The notes under the pieces: generated by a model
The model's input: only the letters and a program-made list of their open reading frames with translations
Told to the model about the DNA's origin: nothing
Database searches by the model: none
Assembly: GCA_000708835.1 (NCBI GenBank)
Contig: DF237070.1
Span: 62,001-126,000, forward strand
Source of the DNA: Klebsormidium nitens
Lineage: Eukaryota; Plantae; Klebsormidiophyceae
DNA: 64,000 bases
Reading direction: 5' to 3'
Shown: piece after piece, positions 4,001-53,903 of the stretch
How the letters are laid out: every line of letters begins with the position of its first letter
How positions within the stretch are numbered: the first letter of the stretch is position 1
Program-made: the position numbers and the translations under genes

Positions 4001-7000
4001 AGACCCCTTGAGCTTGGGCATTCTTGAGGTTGTCAGGTTGTGAGGTAGAAGGGTAGGAAGAAGGTGTGCTTTGCCACGTAAGAGTTGGAAACTTTGGCGC
4101 TGGTAACAGCGTACGGACTCGATGTCCAGTGCTTATTTGGTCGTCCAGGTGCGTCGTCACAACGATGATGTCTTCAGCAGTTCGGCAATGGGATTTTGTT
4201 TGGCACTGAACTGGCAGGGTCTGCAAAGGGAAAGGGAACCTCAGTCTGCAGTTGTGCACTTCAGAATTTTCGAGGTTCCGTGCGTGAGCAAACAATACCG
4301 TCTCATTGCCTGCTTTGTAGTTGGCTAGGAGTTCTTGGTTGCTACCGCCCACTCGCACAGTCGGTAACAAGGGGTGTGGGGATCGAGGAAGCAGGCACCT
4401 TCTACCTATGTATACTGGTCGACACAGCGTTCTTAAACACGTGTTTGTCCTTATGCGGATCAGCAATGTGCTCTCAATGAGCTGCTTTTGCCTGAGCTGC
4501 TTTTGCCAGACGACTTTTTCCCAAAGAAGCAGAATGCACCAGTGTGCTCGATCACTTCACTAAAGCTTCATCAAGCAGCAATGTACAATCTGATGGATAG
4601 CTTGATCATGTAATCGATATTTTTTTTTTCGTTGTAGGTGGACTGTCCCCCGGACGCTGCCGAGTACATCCACCGGGTCGGGAGGACCGCCCGGTACACG
4701 AGCGCCGGGCGCAGCCTGCTGTTCCTGCTGCCATCGGAGCAGGCTATGGTGCAGCAGCTCCGGGATGCTAAGGTACACAGCACGCCCACCAACTCAAAAT
4801 AGTGCTCAGAGGACTAACTTTTGCTGCAATGATCTTCCAAGCTCTTTCCATTGCGGCTTACTTCGTTTCCGAAGCAACAAAGGAAAACACAGAAAGATGG
4901 TGCACGTGGTTGCGCGAAACGCGTGGATATGCCGTAAGAGTGGCTGCGTGCTGTTTGTAATGGGACAGCAACGCTGACAAATGTTTGTCTCTCCAGGAAC
5001 ACCCAGGAGTTGGTGACGTTTCCACTGCATGCAGGAGCCTCTGTGTTGACCTTTCGCGCACCTTCCATATTTCCCCTTTGAAGATTTTGAAACACATTGG
5101 CGTAATCCTCGCAGGTGCCTGTGAAGGTGATAAAAGCGAACCCGACCAAGATCCAGTCCACCTCTTCCAACCTGGCTGGGGTCCTGTCTCAAGACCCGGA
5201 ACTCAAATACACCGCCCAGCGCGCCTTCGTCTCCTACCTCCGTTCGGTTAACCTCCAGCCTAACAAGGAGGTATTCGACGTAACCCGCCTTCCGATCACG
5301 GAGTTTGCGGCTTCGCTAGGGCTGCCAAACGCGCCAAGGATCCGGTTTAGGAAGAAGGGCGCGGCAAAAGAGGAGGGTTTAGGGCTCAGCCCGAAAGTTA
5401 ACCCGGAGGAGAATGGGGGAGGGGAGGAGAATGGGAGCGAAGAGAACGAGGACGATGGGAAAGCCGGTGGTGTGAATAAGCCGGGGATGAGCGGGAGAAG
5501 AATCGCGGAGAACGGGCGAGGTGACGTGGATGATGACGTCACGAAACTTAGAACAAACGAAAAGGGAGGGAAAGAAACAGCTTCGGAGGGAGCGACTGAA
5601 AGCGGAGGATTGGTTGGGGAAGCGAACGGAGACACGGCGAAAGAAGCGAAGAAGCGATCGAAAATGGAGCGCCTCTTCGGGCGCAAGAACGCCGACGTGC
5701 TCTCGGACGCGTACCAGAAGCTGCGCGCGTCGGACGATGACGAGGCTGCTGACATCAGCGGTGACGAGGCGGGGGATCTGCTGCGCGTGAAGCGGAAGAA
5801 CCACGGGCTCGACGGAGAGGACGGGGAGAGCAGCAAGGGGGCGCTCGTGAAAACCGCGAGGTCAGTTCTGCGGTGCTTAGAGTTTTCGCATTCATCCCTT
5901 GCCCTTCGTTTCTTTCTCTGTGCACACTCTGCATTACAATGCAACTTTCTTCTGTTTAGCTGGTGCTTCGATCTTTCACGGATTGGTGAGGACCAAGAGA
6001 CCCTGACGGCCGCTTGCGGCTTTGCGGACTGTTCTTCTTCTTTTTCCCAGCATTGAATCGGTGATATCCCCTCTAATTCTTTCCAAGCCTCCACGAAAGG
6101 TGGACCAGTGACGGCTGACAATAGGCGGAACATTGTGCTGGCAACGCGTCCTGCCATGTACCCACTCAAGGCGGTCAGAGGGTCTTCCTTCTTGGCGACG
6201 ATGACTGCTTCAGAAAGCAGCCACCTCTCGTGCAGGAACTCAGAACCTGACGCAGAAATTCCCCTTCTTCCTTTTGCAGCAAGAAGAAGCGGATGAAGAT
6301 CGATCCGGGTGCGGCGGGCAACAATCGGCTATTGTACGACGAGGAGGGGAACACTCTGGACCCTCTGGCAGCGCTGTCGAGAGACCGGGACGAATCGGGA
6401 GTCGACAACCGGCAGAGGACAATGAATCTGACGGCGGCTGAGAGGTGGGACTGATGCAGAAGGATCGGAAAGGGAGACGGTAATTGCTTGCATCGATTCG
6501 TTGCTTGGTCAGTCCTCGTGAAAACATTTCCTAGCAGACCTTTGGGGATTGCCGTCTATCTGGACGGAAATCCTCCTTTTGAATCAGTTGAGGTTGTTGC
6601 TCGGTGTCAAACCAGGCGTCCTCCCATTTGCCGGTTCTTCTGACAAAGACGGAAAGAGGCAAACGTAATGTGTACCGTCCTATCAGCCCTGCACATTACC
6701 CAGCACGAAGCAAGGTCTCAGGTTCTGCAGTGCCCGCACGATGCATTCCGCTTGTTCTTTTCTGCCAAAATTCATCGAAAAGCTCACATCCTGTTCTCCC
6801 CACAGGTTCAAGAAGCCGCTAGACGCAAGGAGCATCTGTACCTTTTCTCTTCAAAACTGTTGCAGGGGCAATTCGCTTGAATTTTCGACTCAGTTGAGTC
6901 CACTCCATTGATGCTTAAAGGAAGCTCACATCCTGTTTTCCACAGGTTCAAGAAGCTGAGAGAGGAGATGAAAGTGAAGGACGCGGAAGATAAGCGGCTA

Positions 7001-22400: not shown

Positions 22401-24474
22401 GATCTTGCCGATCCTTGATACACAACCTCAAAACAGAGCAATGATCGAGCCCCTGCCCTTCCTATCACCGCAACGAACCTGGTCCAATCCTAACAGCGGA
22501 GTTTCGGGCGCTTGCCTGAGCCTCGTCTCCTCTCGCGCTTCCTCCTGTTCCTCAGCGACCATCACTTGCAGCGGCAGCGCTCCCCTCACCGGATTCAGCA
22601 GCTGCAGGCTCTCCGCTACGACCTGTACGAAGAGATTCTTGAGCATTCAGTAGCGTTAGAATCTTGTCAAGCTACCAGTCGGATATGCAGGTCGAAAACA
22701 GGCTTTCGTGAAGGTATGCCCTAGGTAACCAAAAGAGAACTTAATAGGAACCGCAAAAACTTTGCGAAAGCAAAGAACAGCAAGAGCGATTGTGTAGCCG
22801 AAGGTTGAGGCTCGTAGTGACAATCACGAGTAGCCAGGGGACCATTAGCAAGTTACTACAGGCCCGATAAATCAGATCTGCAAGCTTGGCATTGTCGTAC
22901 AACTGACAGGGAATATTGAGCTTCTTGCTCGACGAAACATTAGAATTCTATCTTTCGATAGTCCTGGACAAGTTCCTGCTGCCCTCAGACATGGTGCAAA
23001 AGTCGAAGCACACACCTCGACCTCCCCCGTTGGCATGTTTGGATTGACCATTTCGTCCGGTCGCGGCTGCACTGTGCCCTCCACAACGACCACGTACTCT
23101 AGTCGCACCCTCTCGGCGGCCAGGTGAACCGCAGCAAAGCGTGTCGGGTTTGACACTATCTGCACCAGCACAGTTGCCAACTGTCAAACCACTGCAGGTT
23201 TACTTTCTGTACAAGCGACGAAAGGAGGAACGACTATTCTAGTCGCACCCTGTCTGCGGCCAAGTATTTATGCCGCAAACAGCCAGATAAGAGACCTAAA
23301 GCTTGAGCATGTTCAAAGGTGCTGTGCTTAGTCGTTGGAAATGTTTCAAAGTCGGCGAGTTTGAACCACATGAGGAGGCAAGTAGCCCAAGTAGCGGGGT
23401 GTTATGCAGGTTCTGATCACGCTCCGGCAAAAGGCTCAATTTTGAGGACCTTGAAGGGCACTTCTCGAACTCAGAGAACAGGATACACACATCACTCCAT
23501 AATCAACCCGTGTAGACAACAAACGCAACATTTGATTGTGTTTTTTGACTCCAAAATTGGGCCTCTCAAGGAACATTGCAGATGAGTCGTCTGTGTCAGA
23601 TCAGAGCAGAGGTTCCTCTTTGTCATCTCTCTTTCAGCTCAAGAACAGCAACAGGTCGCCAAGAATTGAAAGGCACCACTTCTGCCCTCAAGATTCACAG
23701 AGTCTGTCATTTCCATCCAGGTTTGGCCCTCCTATCATGACGCTGGTTGTATGAAGAATCAACACGGCAAGCACGATTTGGAGATTCAACGGACAGGTTT
23801 GGGCAACCACCACCACATCATCGCTGTCAACTTGTCACCAACGCTTACACACTGTTTTGGGCAATTGATACACACTTTTTCTGAGAAACCAGGTGATCAG
23901 GAAGGATAATCAACATATGTGACAAAGCCACAGCACTGCCGACCTGGATGATCCCTGTGTGATCCCTTAGGTTCACAAATGCCACCCCCCCATGACTCCT
24001 CTGCTGTGCCACCCACCCACAGAGCCTCACGCTCTTCCCCACGTCCGCTTTTGTGAGCTGTCCGCACGCGTGCGTCCGGTTCGTCCAAACCAGGCCCTCA
24101 GCCAATGGCAGCGGGTCTGCATCTCCTGATGCATCAGCGGTCTCCAATTGTTGTGTTTCTGCAACGGCCGCTGCTCTGATTTGTTGTCTCCCTAGTTTCT
24201 GGGGGGCTTCATTGTGACGAATCGAACGCAAAGCCTGAGAACAACCACTTAAAAAGGACCGGTGCATTTGGGGCCCGAGATTGGAAGCTGATGGAAGGTT
24301 GCATTTGCTGAGACGTTTGTGCCTGGAGCCAACTAAGTTTGGAAGGGCTTGGACGATGCCACGGCATTGTAGACTTACTTCACATTGTGTGGCCCAGCTA
24401 GCACTTTGATGGCACTTCCTCAAGACTGATTGCAGGGCCGGCCGCTGAGCAGAGAGAGAAGCCATGCTGCCCAT
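16475..24474 (-). CDS. aspS: Aspartyl-tRNA synthetase, bacterial-type organellar (plastid/mitochondrial), multi-exon with transit peptide
   Basis: Exon 1 24474-23944 (...WTNRTHACG...[29 protein letters not shown]), then [104 protein letters not shown]-domain exons, [64 protein letters not shown]. Stop TGA at 16477-16475. Confidence 0.96.
18345..18995 (-). repeat. Array of 3 decayed copies plus the functional copy of an AspRS acceptor/exon start (periods 196, 177, 195 bp)
   Basis: Real acceptor CAG at 18415-18413 ([21 protein letters not shown]). Copies: 18611-18609 (CAG; [21 protein letters not shown]), 18788-18786 (CAG, frameshifted) and 18983-18981 (CGG; [21 protein letters not shown]). 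Confidence 0.92.
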
Positions 24475-25129
24475 GGCGGCCTCGTCTGCTATCCAAGCGG
24501 CAGAAAGTATTGCCTGCACCACTTTGGTGATCACCCAGACAAATCTTCCAAGTTCCAGAACAAGAGATTTTAATGAAGGGCATTTGAAATTGAAGGGAAT
24601 GACATTTGAAGAGAATTGTGAATGGCAATTGGCCGAATGGGTCTTCGACGACGAAACCGTTAACGAGGGCGGTAATGGTTTTGCTTGGGGGGTAAACTCC
24701 AGAAGCATATGTTCTGAGGTACATGACAAATCCAGCAGCCTTCAATGTTTCCAAATCCGGTTTGGAGCAGCGTCGAAGCAGGGACTCAACCATGGAAGTT
24801 CCGAAGCTCTGTGATCGGTCCCACTCAGATAGGGACATGGACATAAAATCCGCCATTTTGATTGGCCCGCGTGTCAAAAAGACCACCGGGGTTCAAGTCA
24901 TTGGAAATAGAATATGTTGCAACGTCATCTGTTCGTCATTTGAATGAATTTAGTGAGATCGGACGGTCAGAGTGAATCAATCACTGTATCGAACGGCCTC
25001 GTGGGGACCATTTGGTATTCCTGATTTTGTCGTATATCCGCTATAAGGGCGGGCATACACACCCTCATATCTCCTTTTTTCCCCTCATCTTCTTCTTTTT
25101 TCTCGTTTCTCTCTGCCTATACTACCTAA

Positions 25130-29286: not shown

Positions 29287-29840
29287 TGGGCCGTCTCTCC
29301 AATCAAAGTGCCCCAACGTCCTGGGACGATTCGATCAGGAGGTTTGGGAGATACTTGTGCTCCGGCTCCTCTATATCAGAGTTGACGGACCACTTGATCG
29401 ATTTAGGAGCGTGTGACCCTGAAGAGCGCCCTGTTTGTCAAACACCTTTCTTTTTCAGTGCTCAGGATTCCCCTAGCTTTCCCTCTGCCACTGCTCTGGA
29501 CACCTTAGGCTTCCGACTTCAGCTTCCAAGTTCCAGGCTTTCTTCACATTGGTTCTGCTGCCGGTTCTGGTCAATCATGCTGATTGCCGAAATCTGTCGG
29601 GTTCGATTGCAAACCCTGTCAACAACCCACAACGCATGAAACAGAATTGGGCTCGAGCCATTCCAAACCAACCAAGGACCTCGACCTTATTCTTGCCCAC
29701 AGCAAAAATGGTAAACTTAACCCTATGAGTGCTCAGCTCGCATACGTAAATCCTTACTTCAATGTCTTTGGAATGTGGAATGTGGGGATGAGCTCAAAGC
29801 AGAGGTGGGATGCGCTCAAATCGGTCACCGCGTCAGAGCA

Positions 29841-32800
29841 ATGGCCAGCTCAAGGAGCCTCTCTCAGAGGCCTTCTTGTGCTTCTCAGGCTGCTGTGTAC
29901 AGAGAGATTAGCTCGCCGGAAATTAGGCCATCGACAAAGGGTCTGCCTCGATGTTGGGGTGCAGACAGGCGAACATGCTTACAATCTTTTTGCGCAACTA
30001 AGCACAGCGCTTCCTTGCATGCTCTACACGTACAATCTGCAAAGGTTCCATTGAGAAGCCACCGCTTAGAACTATCAGGGCGCAAGGGTCGACACTGGAG
30101 GTCACATGCTACCACGTCGAACCATGTCGATAGCCTTGCATTGAGTCCTGAGAATCATGCAAAGAGAGAGGACTCTGAGGAGAAGACCTTTGAGACAGAA
30201 GCAGACCTTGAGAAAGACGACGATGTCATCGCTTTTGGTGTCGAGCTCAGCGACGAGGAAAGCACCGACGATGACGAGGGTGCGGAGAGCACTCTGGAAG
30301 ACGGTCCTACCGTACTCGCACGGCAAGCGCACCAAAAGGCGCTTAGGGCCGCCAGGGATCAGAGGTGGAGACTGGCGAGGCGGCTGTTTGAAAAAGGGGT
30401 GACAGACTTCCCGGACAATGCGCGCATTCTGACGAGCGCTGCAGTCTTTGAGCAGAAGCAGGGGAGGTATGCTGTCTCAAGGGAGTTGTTTCAGCGGGCG
30501 GTGGCAGTGGATTCGAAGAATGTGGTCGCCTTGCAGGTGAGGGTGTCAGTGTCCTCAGGTTTCTAGAAAAGTTGGTGAGCGTCTGCTGGGTGCATCAGTT
30601 ATGGGTCCTTTGCTCAGTCCTCTACCCCAACAGGGAGTTTGCCTGACTTTGAAGCTTCTTTTCGATCATTTAGTGGTGTAACAATGGAGGCGGCAATCGT
30701 GCCATACGGGGTATCTCTGCTACAAACACTGGGGTGTCTTCCCATCTGTCGTACCAATGACCAGTGATCTTCTGACTGAAATAGCATGCCTTCAATGCAG
30801 AACCCCCTTAGCACCTCTCCCGAATCTTAAACACCCAACTTTTAACCACGCAACCTTTTACCCCCTGACCGACTTCAACCCTTTTACCCCCATCTAACCG
30901 CCCCTATACCCTGCCCAGGCCTGGGCTCTCATGGAGTCTCGCTGCTGCAACCCCAGTTGGCGCCGCCGCGTGCGCTCGCTCTTCGAACAAGCCACGTCAG
31001 CAGACCCCTCGCACGCCCCCGCTTGGCAAGCCTGGGCCGTCTTTGAGTGGAAGCAGGGGCGCGCCGCGCTGGCCCGCCAGCTGTTTGAGAAGGCGACGTC
31101 GGCGAACCCGAAGCACGCCCCAAGTTGGCAGGCTTGGGCGCTGGTAGAGAGCAAGGCGGGGCAGTGTGAAAAGGCTCGGGCCCTGTTTGGGAAGGCGCTG
31201 GAGGCGGACCCTGGGCATTTGCCTGCGATTCTGGCGTGGGCAAGGGTGGAGTGGGGCCTCGGAGAGATGGCCAAGGGGCGGGAGCTGTTTGAGAGGGGGG
31301 TGAAGAGGGCGGGGAAAGCGTCGCTGGCGCTGTTGCATGTGAGTTTCTTTAGATCTGAGAGCTCTGCAAAACCACAGAACGAACTCAGAAAACGGGCTCT
31401 TAAGCCCTACTGTGACTCTTGGAAGAACCTCTTGATCGGGCAACTCCAAGATTGGTCTCATATTACCAAGATCGTCAGATGTAGACACCGGGACTGCTAC
31501 ATGCGAAGCTGTTTCAGTGGTCCTTCCCCTGCTCACCCATCAATGACACCGCCGCAATGTCAACAAAGAGGAGGGAAACGTCCACATTAGAGACAACAAT
31601 CAGGAAACGGCCGTCGAACGTGATGGTAATCTGTAAGGCCCTGATGAGGGCTCCAAGGCTAGCTTTAAGTATCTGATTCCTTTTAACAGGACTGGGCCAG
31701 ACACGAGGCACGCAGCAAGCACTTCGGACGCGCGCGCCAGCTGTACCGCAAGGCCGCGGATCTGTACCCCGGCGCTCCGCAAGCGTGGCTGTTGTGGGGC
31801 AAACTAGAGCAGGAACTCCAAAAGTACGACCGCGCCCGGGAGCTCTTCACGAAAGGCCTGCATGCGAGCCATGGCGATAATGAGATCATGTCGCATGCTC
31901 TTGCGATGCTCGAGAAGGTAAGCGATCCTATTTTTTAAATTTCGCTCCCTGGTCTGCAGGTCCTTGGTTGTGCTTGCAGGCAGCGCGGCTCAGTCGGCGG
32001 TTGCTGAGACCTGTTTCCAATTACATCGATTTGCTTCCCCGTATGTTTCTCAACTGTCTCGTAAAAAATCCGAGAGCACCGTTTGAAATTTTGGAGACCT
32101 CCGGTCACTTTGCAGGGCATTGTTCTAGCGCTAGAGGGCAATGGTTCTGCTCTAAGTCGTCAAGACCGCCAGGCATGGCCCCATCAACCGTTGTAACCTC
32201 ATGAAGCAAGTTGATTCCAACTCGGTTCAATGCTAACGCACGCGAGACGGCAAGGAGCCACGGGAATCATTCTCGAAGCCGACCCTCCTTCCGTGATCAC
32301 GCTTGAGTGGTCAGACTCCCGCAGTCAGGCAACGAGTGACGACTTCACTTCCTAGATTCTGATCCCCAGTGACGTCCTCCTGTGCCGTCCTCAGTTTTCG
32401 GGCTTTAAGTCTCTCAGATACTCGCAATCAGGCAGCGGTTTACGACCCCAGTCAATCTTTCTTTACTCGAGACGTTCTCCTGTTGCCAATCCCCGGAAGC
32501 TGGCACTTCAGACCGCACACAGCGCATTCTGGCGGAGATGGTGCACCAACCGGGGCAACATTGATGCGTGGTCAAGTCACGCAACCAGGCAAAACTTGAC
32601 GACTCGGTTTTTGATTCTCCTCAACCGGTGACGTCCTCCTACTGCCGTCCTCAGGAAGCTGGCAACCCGGACCGCGCGCAGCGCAATCTTGCGGAGCTGG
32701 TGCAGCGCGACCGGGGCGCTTGCACGTGGTCAGATTACGCAATCAAGCAAGAGTTGATGACTTATCCCCTCTGGGTTTCTCGCTTGATGACATCTTTCTC

Positions 32801-35135: not shown

Positions 35136-35876
35136 CCTTCTTTGACAAAGATAGGTTGGTTGCGCTAGATGTCATCGAATGCGTCCTCAAAGCTCAAGCC
35201 CATACACCCGTTGACTGATCAATTAAACATGGTTTTGATAGTAGGGTACTTAGGACCGACTTTGCAGTAGCTTGCATGCGTTTGCCTCCAAGACTGCATG
35301 AGTCCCCCGCTTCTGAATATGGTTGAACCCCCTCGGCGCCGGCGGGGCGTGGGTTCTCTTTTCGGTCGATCGCCTTCACCGTCATGTCCCAGCTCGTTTC
35401 GTTTCCATGATCCTCTATATTTATGCCCTACACGACGATCCCATTCGCCTCAGCAAGAGAGCGGAATTGCACTGGCTCGAAGCGGCAGCATGAATTCATT
35501 GTTTTGCATATGTGCAGATTGCTGGTCGGATTCTTATGCAACTCTTGTAAAAAGTGAGCGCGAGCGCCGCGCGCCAGAACATGGTCAGACTTGTGCTATA
35601 TACGTAGCAACGTCCCAGCTTCACGTGTCACGCCAACGGCTGAGATGCTCCATCTCTCCACCGGTGGACGGCTGCGATGAACAGGCTGCGGTTACCTGGG
35701 TGTTTGCAACAGCATTGCTAGAGCCTAGCTGGGGAGCTTTGTAATCTTTCTGGAGGCAGCTCGAAGACTGTGAAGGCCCGCCCTGGCCTCAGGCTTGTTT
35801 GATGGGCGCCACAGCTGATGTCAGACTACCTCAATACGTATCAATCTAGCGGGTAAGGGAGGAGAAACAGACGCCC

Positions 35877-38800
35877 ATGGCTGAAGCAGGTTCATTGGAG
35901 GACCCCACGATGGAGGCGGGGTTGGCCCAAGAAGAAACAGAGCCCCAACAAGTAGGGGAGGCAGAAGATGCTCCCCCCCCACCTCAGGAGGCAATTGAAC
36001 AGCCTGAGGAGGCAATTGAGCACTTTGAGGATGCAACTGAGCAGCCAGCAGAGGCAAGGGAGGAGCCAAAATACCGAGAGATGGGTACAATGACTTCTGA
36101 TTTTGAGGAGTTGGCGGGGATGGTGTTTGTGCCAGCCCCCAAGCCTGACGCTCAGGAGAACGGAGGCGAGGAAACCATGCTGGCAGAAGAAGAGACTGAG
36201 CCTGAGCAGAAAGACGAGGAGCCAGTCAGGAAGGTGTCGTTGTATGTGGAGGCGGTTCCGCCTGCGGCTGAGCTCGAGGGAGGGCGGCAACTAGCGGTAG
36301 CGGAAAATGGAGCACCAGTGGAGGGGACTGAGGAGGTAGCTGCTGCGGATGAGCAGGCAGAGGGGCGGGAAGTGCTCGCGGGGAGCTCTGCTGACGCCAA
36401 GAAGAGAAGGGGCCTGCGGTGTGAGGTCTGCAAGGTGGGTAATATGCATAATCAATGGACTCTGCACAGTGGGACATGTTCGTACAGCATCTGAAGCTCC
36501 TGATTTGAAATTCATCGTTTTTGGGTGCATTTCGGCAGCTCCAGTGGACGAGGTGGATTAAAATAAGGCTTTGGAGGATCTATAAAGATGGGGTAAAACG
36601 TATCTGGGGTACCCTGGGTAAAGGCCCTTGGTCATCTGTTTTGCTCTTCCTCTCCAACTTATCTTTGGGTCCCTTATGCTGACGCTGGGGTGGAACTGTA
36701 TCGCTGCTCTTGATTGCATAGATTCCTTTATGCAGAGCGTCTAAGCATTTAACTGGTTGAAGTAGAACCTTCTTGGAAATGGCAAAATGGAGCCCTAACT
36801 CAATGTGAAACCCTAAAGGCCGCAAAATGTCAAAACGTTTTTAATTATTGCACGCCACTCTTAAGGTTGCGGCAAGTGATCATTGGGATGTGAATTTCAG
36901 CTGAACAAGCGGACTGGAGAGTCTGCTACAATCAGTGCATAGGATGGTGTGCCTCCAGTATGTGCTCAAGATCTGGTTCATCAAAAGAATGTGGTTAAGG
37001 AGCTTGAAAACTGCTGGGGAGTCAGCCTAGGCTGAGAAAGCCAACAAGGCATCCCTTTTTTTCCACTCAGTTACTCAGCAGATACGACGTCCTTGCTAAA
37101 TGCTCAATCAAGGATGATATGTCTCCGCATGTTGACCCTTGATCCATCGTCTACCCTCGTCTCTGCTTGGATCAGCCAAGCCAGGCACTTCAGCTGGGTT
37201 TACATACTTGCTAATGTCAGTCAGCACATGCCTGTCTCTTTGGACTTGCATCAAAAGAGCTCAATAGAGAGACAACCTCCAAGTACCTGTCTGATTGCAT
37301 CTATTATTCAGCCCCCCACGTCACTTTGCGGGGAGTTCAAAATCGAACATTAGGGTTTCTTTTACCCGCACATCAGTTTTATTCAACATGGTCCTTCCCT
37401 CCTAAGGGCATGGTGCAAAGATACACGAGTACAAACAGTCCACTCGTTCCCTCTTCCTTTGTGTATGGGCATCACGTGCGTAGGATGAACTTAAACCGGG
37501 CCTTCGCTTTTGACTTTGAGGGGCACACGAGACACCTGTAGTGTTTTGAAATCACCTTTCCCCGCTTGGAACCGCGGAAATGCCGGCTTTGGTTCCATCA
37601 TGGCGCTTTATGGCCCCCAGTTCTCCCCACTGATCTTAGCCCCCCTCTCCTTTGCAGACGGGAAAAAGGCAGGCTTTGGGGCGTTTGCGCTTTGCAGGCA
37701 ATCGCGCCTCCTTCTGATAGAACCTTCCACGCTTCCGCTTCCCCTTACGTTCACACTAGTTAGTAGCGACCCCCTCTGTTGCAGAGGGTCAGGAGACTGG
37801 CTGCGGCACCAGCAAGGCACACACTTGGTGCATTCCCAACCCCCTTCCTCACACGTTGTCTTTTTCATCAGGATGCGCTGTCTGCGCCCTCTAATCCACT
37901 GACTCTTTCCCCCCCGCTGTCTTTCCAGGAAGTGAGAAAGGTGCTCTCCCCCCCTTTCTTTCCACTAGATTTCGCCCTCATGCCTTTATTGGAGGTGAAA
38001 AAGGCGAGCTGCGGCACTTACAACGAGCACCCGTCATAATCCACTCACTTCTGTATCGACACTTTGCATTGTTGTTACAAAGTGCTCTTACTCCCCTCCT
38101 TTTTACCAACTTTTACCCCGCCCTTTTCCTTTCCAGAGGGTGAAAAAGGCGGGCTGCGGCACCGACAGCGCGCACCCGCGCTGCGAGCGGCGTCCGAACG
38201 GCGACATGCCGGCGGTGGCGCAACTCACTGTGGAGCACGTGATGAAGCTCAGCGCCACCGACGAGGACGAGCGCGTCTCGCTCTGGTGCCCTGCTACCGG
38301 GGCCCGGCTGAGCGGAATGGCGGCGCCGATGTTGAGGAATCTGCCGGCGTGGCTGACGGCGCATCCCGGTTGGGAGCCGGTGGAAAAGCCGCCTGAGGGA
38401 ACACCGTGAGTGTGGGCATCGGGGACCTCGTCTTTGCTTTATTTAAAGAAAAGATCATATCTTCGTCCTTTTGTCTGCATCGCTTAGAAAACGATTGGTG
38501 TTCTTGCAGGGAAGCAGCAATTGAAGTAAGGTATTTTGAAGACGTTAACCTCCGCATGAGAGAAGGATTAATTGCAAGTGTCGATCAACTGCATAGGGCA
38601 TCAATCATTCTGCATCGCCTAACAACCATCAGGATCCGGCTTGCTTAGTGTGTGTACCGGTAGGTTCTTAGAACCTCTTGATAAAGTATCCACGACCTGT
38701 ATCACCTATTGACTTACGCACCTTTTCTTCACACAGAGCGCGGAAAAGGAAACGTGCCCCGGCCGCTGCCCCAGACCATCTCCTGACGGCCACCGAGTCC

Positions 38801-40886
38801 GACGGGTCGGAGCATCCATCTCCTATGGCAAACCCTCCCCAGACACCAAACCCTACGGGGAGCCCCCCCGTGTCTGGCACCCCCAGCCAGGCTAAGCCGT
38901 ATACCCCCTCCAGGTTAGCTATCTTTCTCAACTGAAGGATTCACTTTCTCCAGTCTTGAATCCTTTGCTGGTCTACCAGTTTCTCAGCCTGCCGCGTAGT
39001 GACGTGATATTTTGCTCAACCCCTCCCATCAGCTTCGCCCAGGGGCACTGCAACATAGACCCTTTCTTTATTGCAAAGACCCTCGAGGACTGCACATTCC
39101 TACCACCCCCCCCTCACCTCCTCCTGTCGGGCTGGGGACAGAGATCCCTAAGACGGAGGACGATCCGAGCGGCAGGCGGAGGGACGGCAGGAGCTGACGT
39201 GGCATGCTTTCCATCACGTTCTCTCAGCTTTGCCTCTGTAAGTCACAACTCAAACCCTTCCTATTCTCCCTGTTCTCTCGACACTTGTGCAATCGCTTCT
39301 CCCCCCCCTTTTTAGGCTGGGGACGGAGACCCCCATGACGGAGGAGGAGCGCGAGCGGCAGGCGGAGGCGCGGCGGGTACGCAAGGAGCTCGGCCCGCGC
39401 TGCGAGGTGTGCCAGGTCATCAAGAAGGCCGGGTGCGGGACGGAGGACGCCAACCCGCGCTGCCTGCGGCACCCCCGCAGAGGGGAGCCCGGTCTGCTTG
39501 AGGCCGCGGCGTCGCCCCCGCAGGTGCGGGCTCGCTGGCTGGTTTGTGTTATCAGTGTGACTTCTATACGTGTCGGTCAGTCTCAGGGGAGGGCTCGTTC
39601 TGCAAATGAATTGCAGCGTCCTTTGATTTTGTGAACGCGTTTTCTTAGAAATTTGACTGGATTTTTGGAGACCAGTGCAAGGTGACTATGCTGCGTGAAG
39701 GCTGTAACGAGTGACCGATCTGCGCCTGCCAAATGTTGCTTCATCGGTTAAAGGTGACAATGGGGGAAGTGACGTTCGCACAGCAAGGGGCTTAGAGGAG
39801 GATTGGCTTCAATTTCGTTGTGCCGTTGACCTCACCGCTTATGCAGGGATCGTTCTAAGTTAATCGGTGGGTTTTGCAGCTTTGGTATGTGACTTTAGTT
39901 CTTACCTTCTGAAACGCCGGCGCGCCTTTTTTTTGGGGATTCCCTGGTCCCTTCTAGTCCCGGATTCTTCTCACCCAGATCATTGCCAGTCAGACGATTC
40001 CTGAGGGACATGTCACGGAGGCCAGTAAAAAAAGTCACAGGCAGATGTTTCAACGGAATGCAACTCAGCAGACCCACATCGTTTCTCGAGACAGCCCAAA
40101 CTGTGCTACCTTCATTGAGCGCTAATGCGTTTTACATGTTGCCAGGTGCCTGCGGAGAAGAGGTCCGTCGAGAAGAAGCCGCTGTTCAAGTACGAGGGGG
40201 GTCGCTGCGAGGTCTGCACGACGATCAAGAAGGGCGGGTGCGGGACCGAGAGTGCGCACCGGAGGTGCTTGAAGAACCCGCGGGGGCCGCAGTCGGTGGG
40301 TCGTCCCCGGGTCCCTTCTTGTCCTGGAAATAGTTGTTTCTTCTCAGTGAGGTACATCCTTGTAAAGATTGATCAAGGCTCTAGGTACTTGCGGTGGAAG
40401 ACGGAAGATTTGTAATAACCAAAATCTTTGCATGGCAACATCTTTCGGGCCTCAGTCGGCTTGGATGTCGCTTCCGACGAACGCCTTGCCTTTCTAAGGA
40501 ATGTGCTTCTCCTGAGCGCTTGCTTATCGGACCTGCTGTTTGGTGAGATTGGCCGGGCCAAGTTTGGCGCATCCCTTTCTCAGAGTCCTCGAGCTCATTG
40601 TGTCAAGCTTTGAAACGTGCAGTCAATGAGCCCCCTGAAGGCGCTACCCGGAAACGAGAACGACGACAATCAGGAGAACGAGGGCGAGCAAGGTCCCATG
40701 CTGATAGAGCAGCAACGAGTCACGCTGTGGCACCCGGAAAAGAAGCAGAAGCTCTGCGGAATGGCCGCTCCCATGTTGAAGAACCTCGAAAACTACCTAA
40801 AAATGCATCCAGGCTGGGTGCCAATCCAGAAGATTGATGAAGCCGTAACTGCGTCGCCCGCCGAAGAAGTGATTGAAGCAGAGTAG
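35877..40886 (+). CDS. Uncharacterised putative nuclear protein (541 aa): acidic N-terminus, three C-x2-C-x7-C-x8-C motifs, two BRK domains, basic NLS-like patch
   Basis: Exons 35877-36434, 38137-38405, 38737-38913, 39316-39523, 40146-40295, 40623-40886 are all GT-AG and phase-consistent (1626 nt). Motifs: CEVCK|RVKKAGCGTDSAHPRC, CEVCQVIKKAGCGTEDANPRC, CEVCTTIKKGGCGTESAHRRC; BRK-like ERVSLWCPATGARLSGMAAPMLRNLPAWLTAHPGW and QRVTLWHPEKKQKLCGMAAPMLKNLENYLKMHPGW; RKRKR. Confidence 0.85.
37651..38033 (+). repeat. Four decayed copies of the acceptor/start of exon 2 of the BRK-domain gene
   Basis: tttgcag|acgggaaaaaggcaggctttgg (37651), tgttgcag|agggtcaggagactggctgcggcacc (37777), ctttccag|gaagtgagaaaggtgc (37921), gaggtgaaaaaggcgagctgcggcacttacaacgagcacccg (37992). 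Real: ctttccag|agggtgaaaaaggcgggctgcggcaccgacagcgcgcacccg (38129-38178). Confidence 0.8.
39131..39188 (+). repeat. Decayed copy of the start of exon 4 of the BRK-domain gene
   Basis: tcgg-gctggggacagagatccctaagacggaggacgatccgagcggcaggcggaggg versus the real ttag|gctggggacggagacccccatgacggaggaggagcgcgagcggcaggcggaggc (39316 onward). The acceptor AG reads GG in the copy. Confidence 0.85.
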
Positions 40887-41853
40887 AGGCGGCCTTCTAA
40901 GGCGCCGTCTAGGTGTAGTATTGATATCCCTGCTACTTGGAAGAACACCTTGTTTGAGTAAGTAAAGGTTGTATAATGTATAATCGATAAGACTGATTGA
41001 CACACTCTTGTGAGACTGGATGCCCATGCATCACCAACGACTTCGAGACTCGGGTGTTCTATGTTGCTTAAGCCTGCCCCTAGCAACAAAAGAATATGCG
41101 AACCTCGATGACTATGTTGCGCATGGCGGCCCGGCCAGCCGGCTCCATTTCTCTGGTTGAGCGCAATCTAGGTCGATCATGCATTGTGCAGTTGCAAATT
41201 GGGAGCTGTACGCGCCATACAGTGCACATGTCCATTCTCGGGCACATCTTGGCATCAACATGATATATATAGACGCGATATATATGGTATATGTACGCAG
41301 ATTATAGGCGTATAGGTCATATGACTTGCACATGTCCATCAAACTTTTGTTCTCAAAATATATATACTCGGTACAATTCGTCTGGATCAGACACGCGTGT
41401 GCTGTAACCTAGTATAATGACGTGACGGTTCAATGCACCGCGTGGGGCAGCCATAAACCAGGTTTAGTAATGCACCATGTCATAAGCACAGCCGGTAAGA
41501 CATGATTCAAGCCGTTGTATGCACGGCAATTCCTGACTGTCAGGAGTTGACGTTCAGAGACAGAGACGCATGCACCAGGTAAGGCATGGATTCTAGTATG
41601 CAACTTGTCTGTGCATATGCCTACTCTATCACGTTCAGGTTCGCTGTCACGCTGATCGATCAAAATGAGCTGGGCCTGCTGCGGCGACCAGAAAAGTTAG
41701 GACGATATATACAAACGTCGATATAATTCATGGTGAATCCGGCCCGACTCAGTTCCTGCAAACTCCTGGTTTGCAACTCCTGATTTTGATTTGGATTGCT
41801 GTTAGTTGTATATTTCGTCGTCAATACTCGTCACGAAGAACGACACGGGCTGG

Positions 41854-49161: not shown

Positions 49162-50982
49162 TTATACGTATACGGACGTTTTGAACCACGAAGTAAACAT
49201 GACCTCAACGGGACTCGACCTGCTGTTCCTGTACTGTCCAGCTTTTGTCAAAGTTCCGGCCCAGACTTTGGCAACCCTTCCCTGCTCCTTTGGCGGTAGA
49301 GACAAGAACAACGTCTCCGTCAAGCCTTCAAGCTTCGTGACCTCCATCAGACCCTCTGGAGATGTCCTAGTCAGGTTGCAGATTGCTCCCATCCACTTAA
49401 CCAGAAGCTGCGACTTGAGATCAACGGATACTGGGTAGCCACACCCTGCAGCCGCTTCAAAAATCTTCCACAGGGCAGCATTTTAGCCCGAGCTGCACAG
49501 GTTGGGCTGCTCCTCTAGTTGATTCCAGGATCCGATGAGCTCCGGAACCAGCTCCGGGCAGCTTCGAGTGAACTTAGACACTGCCTCTGAAAGTTTCCTA
49601 TTCCCGAAGCCTCCTTTGAGATGCATTCTCATGAGGACCATAGGATCACTCGCTCCAAAGTTTGTCGCCTCAGTCCAAGCAAACTTTTGCACCAGGTTGC
49701 CGGATGAGGCGTCGGTCTCTCTCAAGGCAGCCCACTCGTGCCTGCAGACGTCTTGATCTGCTTCACTGAAAGAAACGAAGAGATCCTTGGCAACCTCAAA
49801 AAGGTTCTTAGTACAAGACGCCAGGTCTTCCGTGTAGCCCGTGAAGTTTCCTAGACATGCCCCCGCCAAGATCCAGGCTCGTGCTATCTGTACTTTCTTT
49901 TCCTCTTCTAAGCTTGTGCACTGTATCAGGGTAAGCACATTGGAGATGAATCCAAAAAAAATTTCCGCGCTTGCCTGATCCGAGCAGTGTCTTCCCATAA
50001 CCGCGCTGAATCTGGGAGCAAACTCGGGCTTCGCAACCGCTTCTATGGCTTCGCTGTGACAGACGCCGTGCATCAGACAAAACCGGAGGAGCTGCGAGAC
50101 CAGAGAAAGATTGCCCAAGTAGAACGCGCGATCGTAAGATAAACCTCCATATAGAAGCCTTCTAAACTCGCCATTGACCTCCACGATCTTCTTGGAAAGT
50201 GCATCCTTCACGAATTCCTGGGATAGACCTTGCCACTCTAACTTGGCGTGGATGCTGATAAGGTCTTCAGCCGTCTCATTCCCATCCAGCATCCCCGATA
50301 ACAGGGTCTCGAAGAGCGGCTCCAAAAATTCCGCATCCGCCTCAAACTTTGCCAGCTTGTCTGCCAACGCCTTGACAACTTCTGAGCCGAGTCCCTTTAC
50401 AACCTCTTTGATAGTGTCAGCTTCTTCCCCAGACCAAACCGCAGCGTTCAAGTAGTCACAGCAGGCTTGAATGGAAGTCTCGCATCCCAAGAAGCTCGCC
50501 GCCTGCAGGACTTCCACAGCCTGCTTTGTATCTTTGAAAGGGAGAGGCTCATTTCTCTTTCCTGCACCTTCAGACGCGTACAGAAGCCGCAATGCATGTG
50601 AACAAGCACTCAGGTCCTCGCAATCAACTATGAGCTCCGGCAGTTCGCAGTCGTTTGATTTCTTTTCCCCAAAGCTTCCCGCTTCCATGTTCCAACGAGA
50701 AAGTTTGGCTTCAAAGTAGGCTGATCCATCTCGCAGCCTGCTTGTATGCAGACGGAGTTTCATCTCTTCCTGCTCACTCTTGTTGTCTGCTGTTCCTTTT
50801 GAGACATCTAGGGAGAAGGCACTTTTCCTTCTCTTACGCCCCTCCTCGGTGTCCTGCCAACCAGGCACAGTTTCAAGGGCTGCGGAAGCAGTCTCTTGCT
50901 TTGTCCTACGAAGCACGACGATGATATCTTTTGCAGTGGCGGGGTCATCAAGAGCCATGTCTTCGCTCGCAGGTTGCGCCAT
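49162..50982 (-). pseudogene. Intronless BTB/POZ protein (At3g05675/At1g63850-like family), copy 1; in-frame TAA at codon 500 of about 606
   Basis: The 499-aa ORF has LRLHTSRLRDGSAYFEAKLSRW, CSHALRLLY and VLQAASFLGCETSIQACCDYLNAAVW. After TAA (49485-49483) the same frame continues with NAALWKIFEAAAGCG...KLEGLTETLFLSLPPKEQ...VMFTSWFKTSVYV*, which matches the family's C-terminal LE-x-x-x-x-T-x-LTLP-x-x-x-Q...F-x-x-W motif. It may be a truncated but expressed gene. Confidence 0.8.
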
Positions 50983-52049: not shown

Positions 52050-53903
52050 TTACTTGTAGACAAACTTCTTGCACCACGATGTAAACATAACGTCAATGGA
52101 CGAGCTTCTGTCCTTGTAGGTTCCAGATTCTTCTAGAGATCTGGCCCAGGCTTTTGAGACTTCTCCCTGCTCCTTCCGCGGTAGAGACATGAACAACGTC
52201 TGTGTCAAGTATTCAAGTTTCTTCACCTCTAACCCACGTCTGGACTTCCTACAGATCTCTGTCATCCACACTTCCAAAAGGTGCGACTTGTGCTCTATGG
52301 GTACTGGGTAAGCACACCCTGCAGCCGCTTCGAGTATAACCAGAAAGGCAGCCTTCGGACCCCAGCTGGACAGGGTAGGCTCCTCCTCTACTTGATTCCA
52401 TGATTCGATCAGCTCAGGAACAAGCTCAGGCAGCTTTCCACAAAAGCAGAGAGTGCCCCTTCAAGGCTTCTTCTCTGCAAGCCTCCTTTGAGATGCATCC
52501 TCATCAGGTCCAGAGGCTCACTCGTTTTCTTGAAGTTCCTTGTCTCAGGTTTTACGAATTCTCCGAGTAGGTTGCCGGACGAATCGTCGATTTCTGTCAA
52601 GGCCCACACATGCCTGCAGCAATCTTGGTGTGCTGCACTCAAAGAGAAGAAGACTTCCCCGGCAGCTTCAACAGAGTTCTTCAAGTTGGTACAAGCCGCC
52701 AGATTTACTCTGTACCCAGAAGTTCTCAAACTGGCCCCAGCCAAGATACACGCCCGAGCGATTGGGACCTTTTCATCCTCCTACAAGGTTGTGCTTCGTA
52801 TCAAAGTGAGCACATTGGAGAGGAGTCCAAATACTGCGTCGGCGCTTGCCTGATCTTCCAAGCCTTTCCTGTCAGCAAGCCTGCTGAAATCAGCTGCGAG
52901 CTCCTCGGGCTTGACGAATGCTTCTGTCGCTTCGTTGTGGCAAACGTCGTGTGTCACACAGAAACGGAGGAGCTGCGCCAATGCAGAGATCGTGCGCGAA
53001 AAGTGCTGGCTAGAGAGTTCCAAGCCTCCATGCAAAAGCTGTTCAAACTTGCCTTGAAGCTCCACAATTTGATAAGAAACTGCATCCTCAATGAAATCCT
53101 TGGGAAGACCTTGCCACTTCGACTTGGCATGAGTGTGAAGAAGTTCTTCCGCCGTCCCACTTTGAGCGAGCATCCCCATTAACAGGATCTCGAAGAAAGG
53201 CTCCAAGAACGTAGAGTCCCTCTCAAACTCTGCCAGCTTCCCTGCCACAGCCTTGGCAACCTCGGAACCGAGCCCCTGTACAATCTCTTTGATGCTGTCA
53301 ATGTCTTCTTCCGGCCAAACCGCAGCGTTCAAGTACTCACAACATGCTTGGATTGGATTCTCGCACCCCAAGAAGCTGGCCGCCTGCAGGACTGCCACAG
53401 CCTGTTTTGTATCTCGAAACGGGAGAGGTTGCTTTCTCCTATTTGCACCTTCAGACGTACTGTACGTCAGCAGCTGCAATGCAAGTGAACTAGCACTTGC
53501 GTCCTCGCACTCAACTATGAGCTCCGGCAGTTCACAGCCGCTTGAACCTTTCTCTTCAAAGCCTTCGGCTTCCAGGTTCCAACGGGACAGTCTGGCTTCA
53601 AAGTAGGAAGATACCTCTCGCAGCTTGCTTGTATGCAAGCGAAGACTTATTTCTTCAAGTTGCCCACAGATCTTGTTGTCGACTGTCGTGTCTGGATTTG
53701 CGGAAGAGGAGATGATACCACTCACGGTACTTTTACTTTTCTGACGTCCCTCCTCAGTAACCCGCCAAAAGTTGGGACCGCCTTCCAGGGCTGCGGAAGC
53801 AGTCTCTTGCTCTGCCTTGCTTGGCGAACGGAGTACAACGATGATATCTTGTGCTGCAGCGGAGTCACCAAGAGCCATGTCTTTGCTCGCAGGTTGCGCT
53901 CAT
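52050..53903 (-). pseudogene. BTB/POZ paralog, copy 2, pseudogene with three lesions
   Basis: Colinear with copy 1 along its length. Lesions: an extra A after the first ATG (ATG-A-GCG CAA CCT versus ATG GCG CAA CCT) at about 53900; TAG at 52783-52781 where copy 1 has Glu; a 1-nt deletion at 52429-52430 (TGC CT GAG versus TGC CCG GAG). The remaining C-terminus (...KLEYLTQTLFMSLPRKEQ...FTSWCKKFVYK*) is still recognisable. Confidence 0.85.

Follow-up and report, generated by a model that had tools for sequence, protein, structure and literature searches.

The BRK domain (Pfam PF07533) has a GYF-like fold with a conserved groove that is predicted to bind peptides, and it has been argued to be a peptide-recognition module (PMC7096718). 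It is present in the disease genes CHD7, CHD8, and SMARCA4, yet no ligand has been established for any BRK domain (PMC7096718). SCOP puts BRK into the fold class of GYF_2 (PMC7096718), and the land-plant H3K4 methyltransferase ATXR3 carries GYF_2, not BRK (PMC13132833; PMC6986063). The subject here is gene KFL_001210100 of the streptophyte alga Klebsormidium nitens, which lies in a 64,000-nucleotide (nt) stretch of contig DF237070.1 (positions 62,001 to 126,000 of its forward strand; the whole stretch is called “the window” below, and its first nucleotide is position 1). The gene encodes a protein of 541 amino acids (aa) in which two BRK domains are combined with three copies of a short four-cysteine motif (“Cys4” below), with no ATPase or other enzyme domain. 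The chance that this protein is a nuclear, noncatalytic chromatin adaptor is judged to be about even.

The coding sequence (CDS) of KFL_001210100 occupies 35877-40886 on the + strand and consists of six exons and five introns, all of the latter with GT-AG ends. When spliced it is 1626 nt long (541 codons and a stop) and has no internal stop codons, and its translation from the window is identical at 541/541 positions to GAQ82716.1 (hypothetical protein KFL_001210100, Klebsormidium nitens). The five predicted introns are precisely absent from transcript contigs of four runs from four studies, aligned to 35600-41200. These are assembled contigs, not raw reads, and the runs were taken to be RNA because contigs that lack the introns are hardly explicable otherwise. 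Two individual contigs, of 1929 and 1948 nt, each cover all six exons, so the idea that the exons belong to separate transcripts failed and the original prediction of a single six-exon gene stands. KFL_001210100 is a real, expressed gene, and its match to that prediction is well beyond chance. Its features are as follows (pLDDT, predicted local distance difference test; L001, a metagenome relative discussed below).

35743..41074, + strand: transcribed unit; mRNA ends approximate (the 1948-nt and 1929-nt contigs start at 35743/35787 and end at 41074/41072)
35877..36434, + strand: exon 1, aa 1-186; acidic, probably disordered N-terminus, ending in the first C-E-V-C of Cys4-1
36420..36434 and 38137-38184, + strand: Cys4-1, aa 182-202; split by intron 1, with the first half (C182-x2-C185-K) in exon 1; splice junction seen in transcripts
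38137..38405, + strand: exon 2, aa 187-276; second half of Cys4-1 (38137-38184, to C202), linker, and BRK1
38260..38379, + strand: BRK1, aa 228-267; Pfam PF07533, E 3.2e-12, 46.4 bits
38737..38913, + strand: exon 3, aa 276-335; RKRKR, then a Pro/Ser/Thr-rich linker
38741-38755, + strand: basic stretch RKRKR, aa 278-282; counterpart ARKRRK kept in L001
39316..39523, + strand: exon 4, aa 335-404; contains Cys4-2
39401-39463, + strand: Cys4-2, aa 364-384 (C364-C384), in exon 4
40146..40295, + strand: exon 5, aa 405-454; contains Cys4-3
40206-40268, + strand: Cys4-3, aa 425-445 (C425-C445), in exon 5; model core pLDDT 75-85
40623..40886, + strand: exon 6, aa 455-541 and stop; short acidic stretch, BRK2, and acidic tail
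40713..40820, + strand: BRK2, aa 485-520; Pfam PF07533, E 6.3e-9, 35.8 bits

The order of parts proposed originally, namely acidic N-terminus, Cys4-1, BRK1, RKRKR, Cys4-2, Cys4-3, and BRK2, is that of the spliced translation and the Pfam matches. The proposed lack of an ATPase also holds: BRK is the sole Pfam family returned for the 541-aa protein, and the scan found no SNF2 or helicase domain and neither SET nor SDG2_C. The transcript limits near 35743 and 41074 leave no space for an SNF2 ATPase with Helicase_C. The first 172 aa contain 28% D+E and only 5% K+R. Within exon 1 there are two conserved islands, at aa ~65-85 (KYREMGTMTSDFEELAGMVFV) and aa ~115-128 (EEPVRKVSLYVEAVP), both of which are identical or near-identical in Klebsormidium subtile and L001. 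Exon 1 also contains an in-frame tandem repeat (35982-36057; 21 nt, 3.6 copies, 74% matches) that encodes acidic P-E-E-A-I-E-Q-like heptads. The RKRKR stretch is a likely nuclear localization signal.

The two BRK domains of the original prediction are both recognized by the PF07533 hidden Markov model (HMM). The whole protein scores 73.5 bits (E 1.1e-20, in two stretches), and the separate scores of 46.4 and 35.8 bits lie above the curated (gathering) cut-off of 23 bits. In phmmer comparisons with PDB sequences, BRK1 aligns to the CHD7, CHD8, and BRG1 BRK chains, and BRK2 aligns to those of BRG1 (6sy2) and CHD7; CTCF/C2H2 rows among the BRK2 matches were rejected as summed chance matches. The positions reported as strictly conserved in the BRG1 domain (V617, V619, G625, K626, L628, A633, P634, W642, L643, N/H646, and P647; PMC7096718) were also scored. 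BRK1 matches eight of these 11 (V, G, L, A-P, W-L, and H-P are retained) and BRK2 matches six (V, L, A-P, L, and H-P). V619 is replaced by L in both domains, and in BRK2 W642 is replaced by Y and the G625/K626 positions are lost. The fold was compared with those of CHD7 and BRG1, as had been proposed, by modeling a homologous Cys4-BRK cassette from Closterium (P0020:262-378, with window exon 2 in the alignment). Its BRK part is a strand-strand-helix with pLDDT 81-84, and the six top-ranked hits in a Foldseek search of the PDB are BRK domains of CHD7, CHD8, or BRG1 (probability 1.00). Four of these superimpose with a root mean square deviation of 1.0-1.5 Å over 37-40 columns. The beta-beta-alpha-beta BRK fold is ascribed to the window's own domains by way of this modeled homolog and, with little doubt, from their HMM scores.

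Twelve of the 14 cysteines of the protein fall in the three Cys4 units, which have the form G-x-R-C-E-V-C-x2-[IV]-K-K-[AG]-G-C-G-T-[ED]-x-A-[HN]-x-R-C; in the unit split by intron 1 the break falls after C-E-V-C-K. The flanks of the units are basic (26-33% K+R). Thirteen Cys4 copies were aligned, from K. nitens, K. subtile, L001, Closterium, a further locus (L002), and the marine loci described below. The spacing C-x2-C-x7-C-x8-C is constant in 13/13, and the invariant residues are the four cysteines, the glycine after the third cysteine, and one alanine. The three KFL_001210100 copies are 42-48% identical to one another over 48-aa segments, and Cys4-2 and Cys4-3 are 56% identical over a tighter segment; the motif itself is 21 aa long. 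The Cys4-3 model has one short helix, which follows the first C-x2-C, and the Cys4 part of the Closterium cassette model has a pLDDT below 50. No Pfam family matches Cys4 up to an E of 10 (exons 4 and 5 included), and a search of the ESM Atlas by features gave no usable match for the Cys4 region or the whole protein (pLDDT of the Atlas model, 0.45). Its ligand pattern would fit a knuckle-like mini-domain that holds a single zinc.

The CXXC zinc finger (PF02008; CFP1, MLL, DNMT1, and KDM2) is likewise a small, basic, cysteine-rich motif of chromatin proteins. There is a superficial likeness to Cys4 in how it begins (R-C-x-x-C) and ends (K-x-G-G ... R-x-C). However, CXXC fingers have eight cysteines in two CGXCXXC clusters, whereas the Cys4 unit has four, and membership of this family was rejected on that count and for want of a Pfam match at E 10 or a PDB sequence match. 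Cys4 appears to be an undescribed and unnamed conserved module that is not private to the KFL_001210100 protein.

The searches returned full-length orthologs from Klebsormidium and a single metagenome relative only. That of K. subtile (P0156) is 546 aa long and 94% identical, and L001, a 103-kb metagenome contig, has six exons in the same order and with the same boundaries. Word-indexed protein searches with the Closterium cassette, the Cys4 region, and the full protein returned near relatives only and are uninformative on distant ones. DNA similarity between the window and L001 covers all six exons and is confined to them, with none in the introns. The ratio of nonsynonymous to synonymous substitution rates (dN/dS) against L001 is 0.20, 0.40, 0.14, 0.19, and 0.06 for exons 2 to 6, respectively, with synonymous sites near saturation; exon 1 is fully saturated. 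KFL_001210100 is under purifying selection.

Two of the introns contain decayed copies of neighboring exon sequence. Intron 1 holds four such copies in tandem (37637..38039, + strand), each comprising the polypyrimidine tract, the acceptor, and about the first 50 nt of exon 2, the part that encodes the KKAGCGT half of Cys4-1. They are 61-80% identical (families D1-D3) and are spliced into no transcript contig; one still reads EVKKASCGT...EHPS before a stop. One comparable relic is present in L001 (7656-7754). In intron 3 the acceptor and beginning of exon 4 recur in decayed form at 39117..39191 (+ strand; 77-88% identity), 185 nt upstream of the true exon, and this copy has lost its AG acceptor. 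Because of these relics it is suggested that KFL_001210100 grew by local exon duplication. The same relics might be taken to mean that the gene model is an annotation artefact, built from exons of separate transcripts, or a decaying pseudogene. That is vanishingly improbable, given an intact reading frame, all six exons in single transcript contigs from four studies, the 546-aa K. subtile ortholog at 94% identity in a transcriptome, and dN/dS values of 0.06-0.20 against L001. The full-length contigs, the identity to GAQ82716.1, and dN/dS together exclude the possibility that this is not a real gene.

Both modules occur in other company. An exhaustive phmmer search of 1.84 billion cluster representatives with exon 2 gave 144 matches at E <= 1e-3, among which WD40 proteins (P0019, P0034, P0039, and others) were discarded as spurious matches to “VRLWDPATG”-type blades. 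The Cys4-linker-BRK cassette is also present in Closterium proteins of 890-946 aa that have a SET-like region, and a Closterium-like copy in the Leptophrys vorax transcriptome is probably from algal prey. A divergent cassette (P0058; C-P-V-C ... D-C-G ... C) belongs to locus L002 (722-9702), where Cys4-BRK lies upstream of open reading frames (ORFs) that match SDG2_C. Chlorokybus atmophyticus has a 1923-aa protein (P0139) with BRK, SET, SDG2_C, and GATA domains and without Cys4. ATPase-free proteins with two or three BRK domains, again without Cys4, are found in red algae (Pyropia, Rhodosorus, Hildenbrandia, and Porphyridium), in Rhodelphis, and in many marine eukaryotes. Other partners of BRK include a CHD6-9-type remodeller and, in protists, HDAC (P0075, 2504 aa), bromodomain plus PHD (P0142, 1024 aa), and SET (P0089, 1510 aa). 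By domain content BRK is a promiscuous chromatin module well beyond animals. The original prediction had started from BRK as an animal domain attached to SNF2 ATPases, a premise that is outdated and not supported by the ATPase-free BRK proteins of red algae, Rhodelphis, and protists, by BRK on SET, HDAC, and bromodomain plus PHD proteins, and by published work (PMC9113485). Databases already showed BRK outside animals and outside ATPases, and nothing found here overturns current views.

A tree of BRK domains was built from 52 columns, too few to decide orthology; its support is mostly weak, and its SDG2-like rows are long branches. In it the B1 clade of red algae is sister to their B2 clade (89/92), while the two Klebsormidium domains are separated; the deep forks are weak. 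Klebsormidium BRK1 falls with the SDG2-like and Closterium cassette domains on one side of a weakly supported split (78/77). Because the red-algal domains are sisters and those of Klebsormidium are apart in this weak tree, the two-BRK layouts of the two groups may have arisen independently.

When JGI metagenome contigs were scanned with the Cys4 alignment, ten marine loci emerged (L003-L012), with 60-65% guanine plus cytosine (53% in one) and long ORFs without introns; BRK is not nearby in any of them. In these the Cys4 unit forms the end of an SNF2 ATPase, a Myb protein, or a DUF5832 protein, and the ESM Atlas places the SNF2 ATPase near ATRX-like clusters. Viral contigs scanned with Cys4 gave no relatives. 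DNA of L006 (2839-3302) is 97-99% identical to that of L007, L011, and L012 over the last ~280-445 nt only (Cys4, basic tail, and 3′ flank); upstream of this shared DNA the genes differ and encode the SNF2 ATPase, the DUF5832 protein, or the Myb protein. Either a 3′ module has spread recently or the assemblies are chimeric. Proteins with Cys4 thus include SNF2, SET-like, Myb, and BRK types, and where the organism is known it is mostly a green alga.

If the KFL_001210100 protein is a nuclear, noncatalytic chromatin adaptor, each Cys4 unit would bind one zinc ion and, with its basic flanks, hold DNA or nucleosomes; such an anchoring role is proposed because the unit is basic and is associated with SNF2, SET-like, Myb, and BRK modules. 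The BRK domains (GYF-like beta-beta-alpha-beta, with a conserved groove) would grip short linear peptide motifs of partner proteins, and the acidic tail and the conserved islands could recruit further partners or histones. The free protein would probably go to the same ligand or sites as SDG2/ATXR3-type methyltransferase-like proteins, because they share the Cys4-BRK cassette, and it might bridge or compete there. The company of Cys4 and of the cassette (Closterium SET-like proteins, the L002 SDG2_C ORFs, SNF2 ATPase, Myb, and DUF5832) supports an adaptor role.

Several points weigh against this interpretation. Zinc and nucleic acid binding by Cys4 are putative: profiles from the Cys4 alignment gave only chance-level rows in the PDB (Arp10/11, rubredoxin, and MYND), and the 48-residue Cys4-3 model, which is probably too small for such a comparison, had no structural match by Foldseek or VIA-align. 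As no BRK domain has an identified ligand (PMC7096718), the peptide-gripping step is a prediction, and the putative nuclear location is deduced from RKRKR and guilt by association. The SET-like region of the Closterium proteins scores 19.3 bits, below the Pfam cut-off of 22.4, and the link between the cassette and SDG2/ATXR3 is confirmed only in L002, which is another organism; the Chlorokybus SDG2 protein has BRK without Cys4.

Other functions can be imagined for the same parts. The combination of an acidic tail with a basic stretch and several basic, putative metal-binding motifs is the classic layout of an activator, and Cys4 also terminates a Myb DNA-binding protein; the protein could in that case be a sequence-specific transcription activator in which the Cys4 units read DNA, the acidic N-terminus activates, and BRK recruits a co-activator. 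This seems unlikely, though it deserves to be kept in mind: nothing points to sequence specificity in copies that are only 42-48% identical and have a motif of just 21 aa, and the presence of Cys4 on enzymes (SNF2 and SET-like) better fits a general anchor to chromatin or DNA. A cytoplasmic scaffold that binds RNA or proteins, with Cys4 as an RNA-binding zinc knuckle, would not be a chromatin protein at all. Small basic zinc knuckles often bind RNA. BRK also belongs to the GYF fold class, many proteins of which control mRNA (PMC7096718; PMC13132833). However, all of the domains seen here alongside BRK or Cys4 are related to chromatin or DNA (SNF2, CHD6-9, SET, HDAC, bromodomain, PHD, Myb, and GATA) and a classic basic RKRKR stretch is present, so such a scaffold is judged very unlikely.

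Two further readings tie the protein more closely to SDG2/ATXR3. It might be an offshoot, without catalytic activity, of the module that targets these enzymes, and might serve as a decoy or regulator by competing with them for their ligand. The cassette is common to the SDG2-like locus and the Closterium SET-like proteins, the Chlorokybus SDG2 bears BRK, BRK1 groups (weakly) with the SDG2-like and Closterium domains, and introns 1 and 3 retain the relics of local exon duplication. All of this is compatible with such an origin, which nonetheless seems quite unlikely when the BRK tree has so few columns, mostly weak support, and long SDG2-like branches, and when competition is purely conjectural. 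Equally doubtful is a broader proposal, in which Cys4 would be a new zinc-binding chromatin or DNA anchor of the green lineage, Cys4-BRK would be the ancestral targeting module of streptophyte SDG2/ATXR3, functionally replaced by GYF_2 in land plants, and KFL_001210100 would encode a free-standing copy. If that were true, the protein would control the placement of H3K4 methylation and would also serve as a minimal system in which to look for the BRK ligand that has long been sought. The adaptor interpretation is preferred to all of these, and the original prediction is, taken as a whole, partly supported.

As a small, ATPase-free, well-expressed protein with two BRK domains, the KFL_001210100 product could be a simple bait for BRK ligands, and algal chromatin proteins would be better annotated once Cys4 is named and characterized. 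The neighbors of KFL_001210100 in the window include housekeeping genes: an SPB4-like C-terminal extension of a DEAD-box helicase (5115-6056, + strand), an OB-fold anticodon-binding domain of an aminoacyl-tRNA synthetase (23845-24729, - strand), and a TPR/HAT-repeat protein (29775-31590, + strand). Two unusually long ORFs of 499 and 365 aa (49483-50982 and 52781-53878, both - strand) have no Pfam match at E 0.01. There are no tRNA genes in the 64-kb window and no Rfam matches within its 33-44 kb region.

By HMM the BRK domains of this protein belong to the same family as those of CHD7/CHD8/Kismet and BRG1/BRM/Brahma (PDB 2ckc, 2v0e, 2v0f, 2cka, 2dl6, and 6sy2), and the fold seen in the homologous Closterium cassette model is that of the CHD7, CHD8, and BRG1 domains. 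The animal remodellers also have an SNF2 ATPase and a chromodomain or HSA; none of these is present in the KFL_001210100 protein, which comes from a streptophyte alga. Each of its BRK domains is preceded by a Cys4 unit, whereas the matched animal proteins show no Cys4. The best matches outside Klebsormidium (46-58% identity over BRK) are the multi-BRK proteins of red algae and protists (Pyropia KAK1868834.1, Rhodosorus KAJ8903043.1, and Rhodelphis EP00736_P012637), all of them unstudied. These have two or three BRK domains in 360-800 aa and, like the KFL_001210100 protein, are otherwise of low complexity and have no enzyme domain, but they lack Cys4, of which it carries three copies. Among SDG2/ATXR3 H3K4 methyltransferases, members from early-diverging streptophyte algae carry BRK (Chlorokybus P0139, and L002 with its divergent Cys4-BRK), which, set beside the GYF_2 of land-plant ATXR3, hints at a BRK-to-GYF_2 exchange within this family, and so in the H3K4me3 machinery, during plant evolution. 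Members of the family have SET followed by SDG2_C (both in P0139, SDG2_C in L002), and the KFL_001210100 protein has neither. The protein had been put forward as undescribed. For its BRK part this does not hold, since the gene is annotated and UniRef (A0A1Y1I1U6) automatically names the product “BRK domain-containing protein”, although none of the papers searched mentions KFL_001210100; for the Cys4 motif, which has no Pfam, PDB, or fold match, it does. What seems to be new relative to all of these systems is thus limited to two features: Cys4, as a conserved module that has no name, and its apparent arrangement with BRK as Cys4-BRK, Cys4, Cys4-BRK, an architecture seen only in Klebsormidium and one relative.

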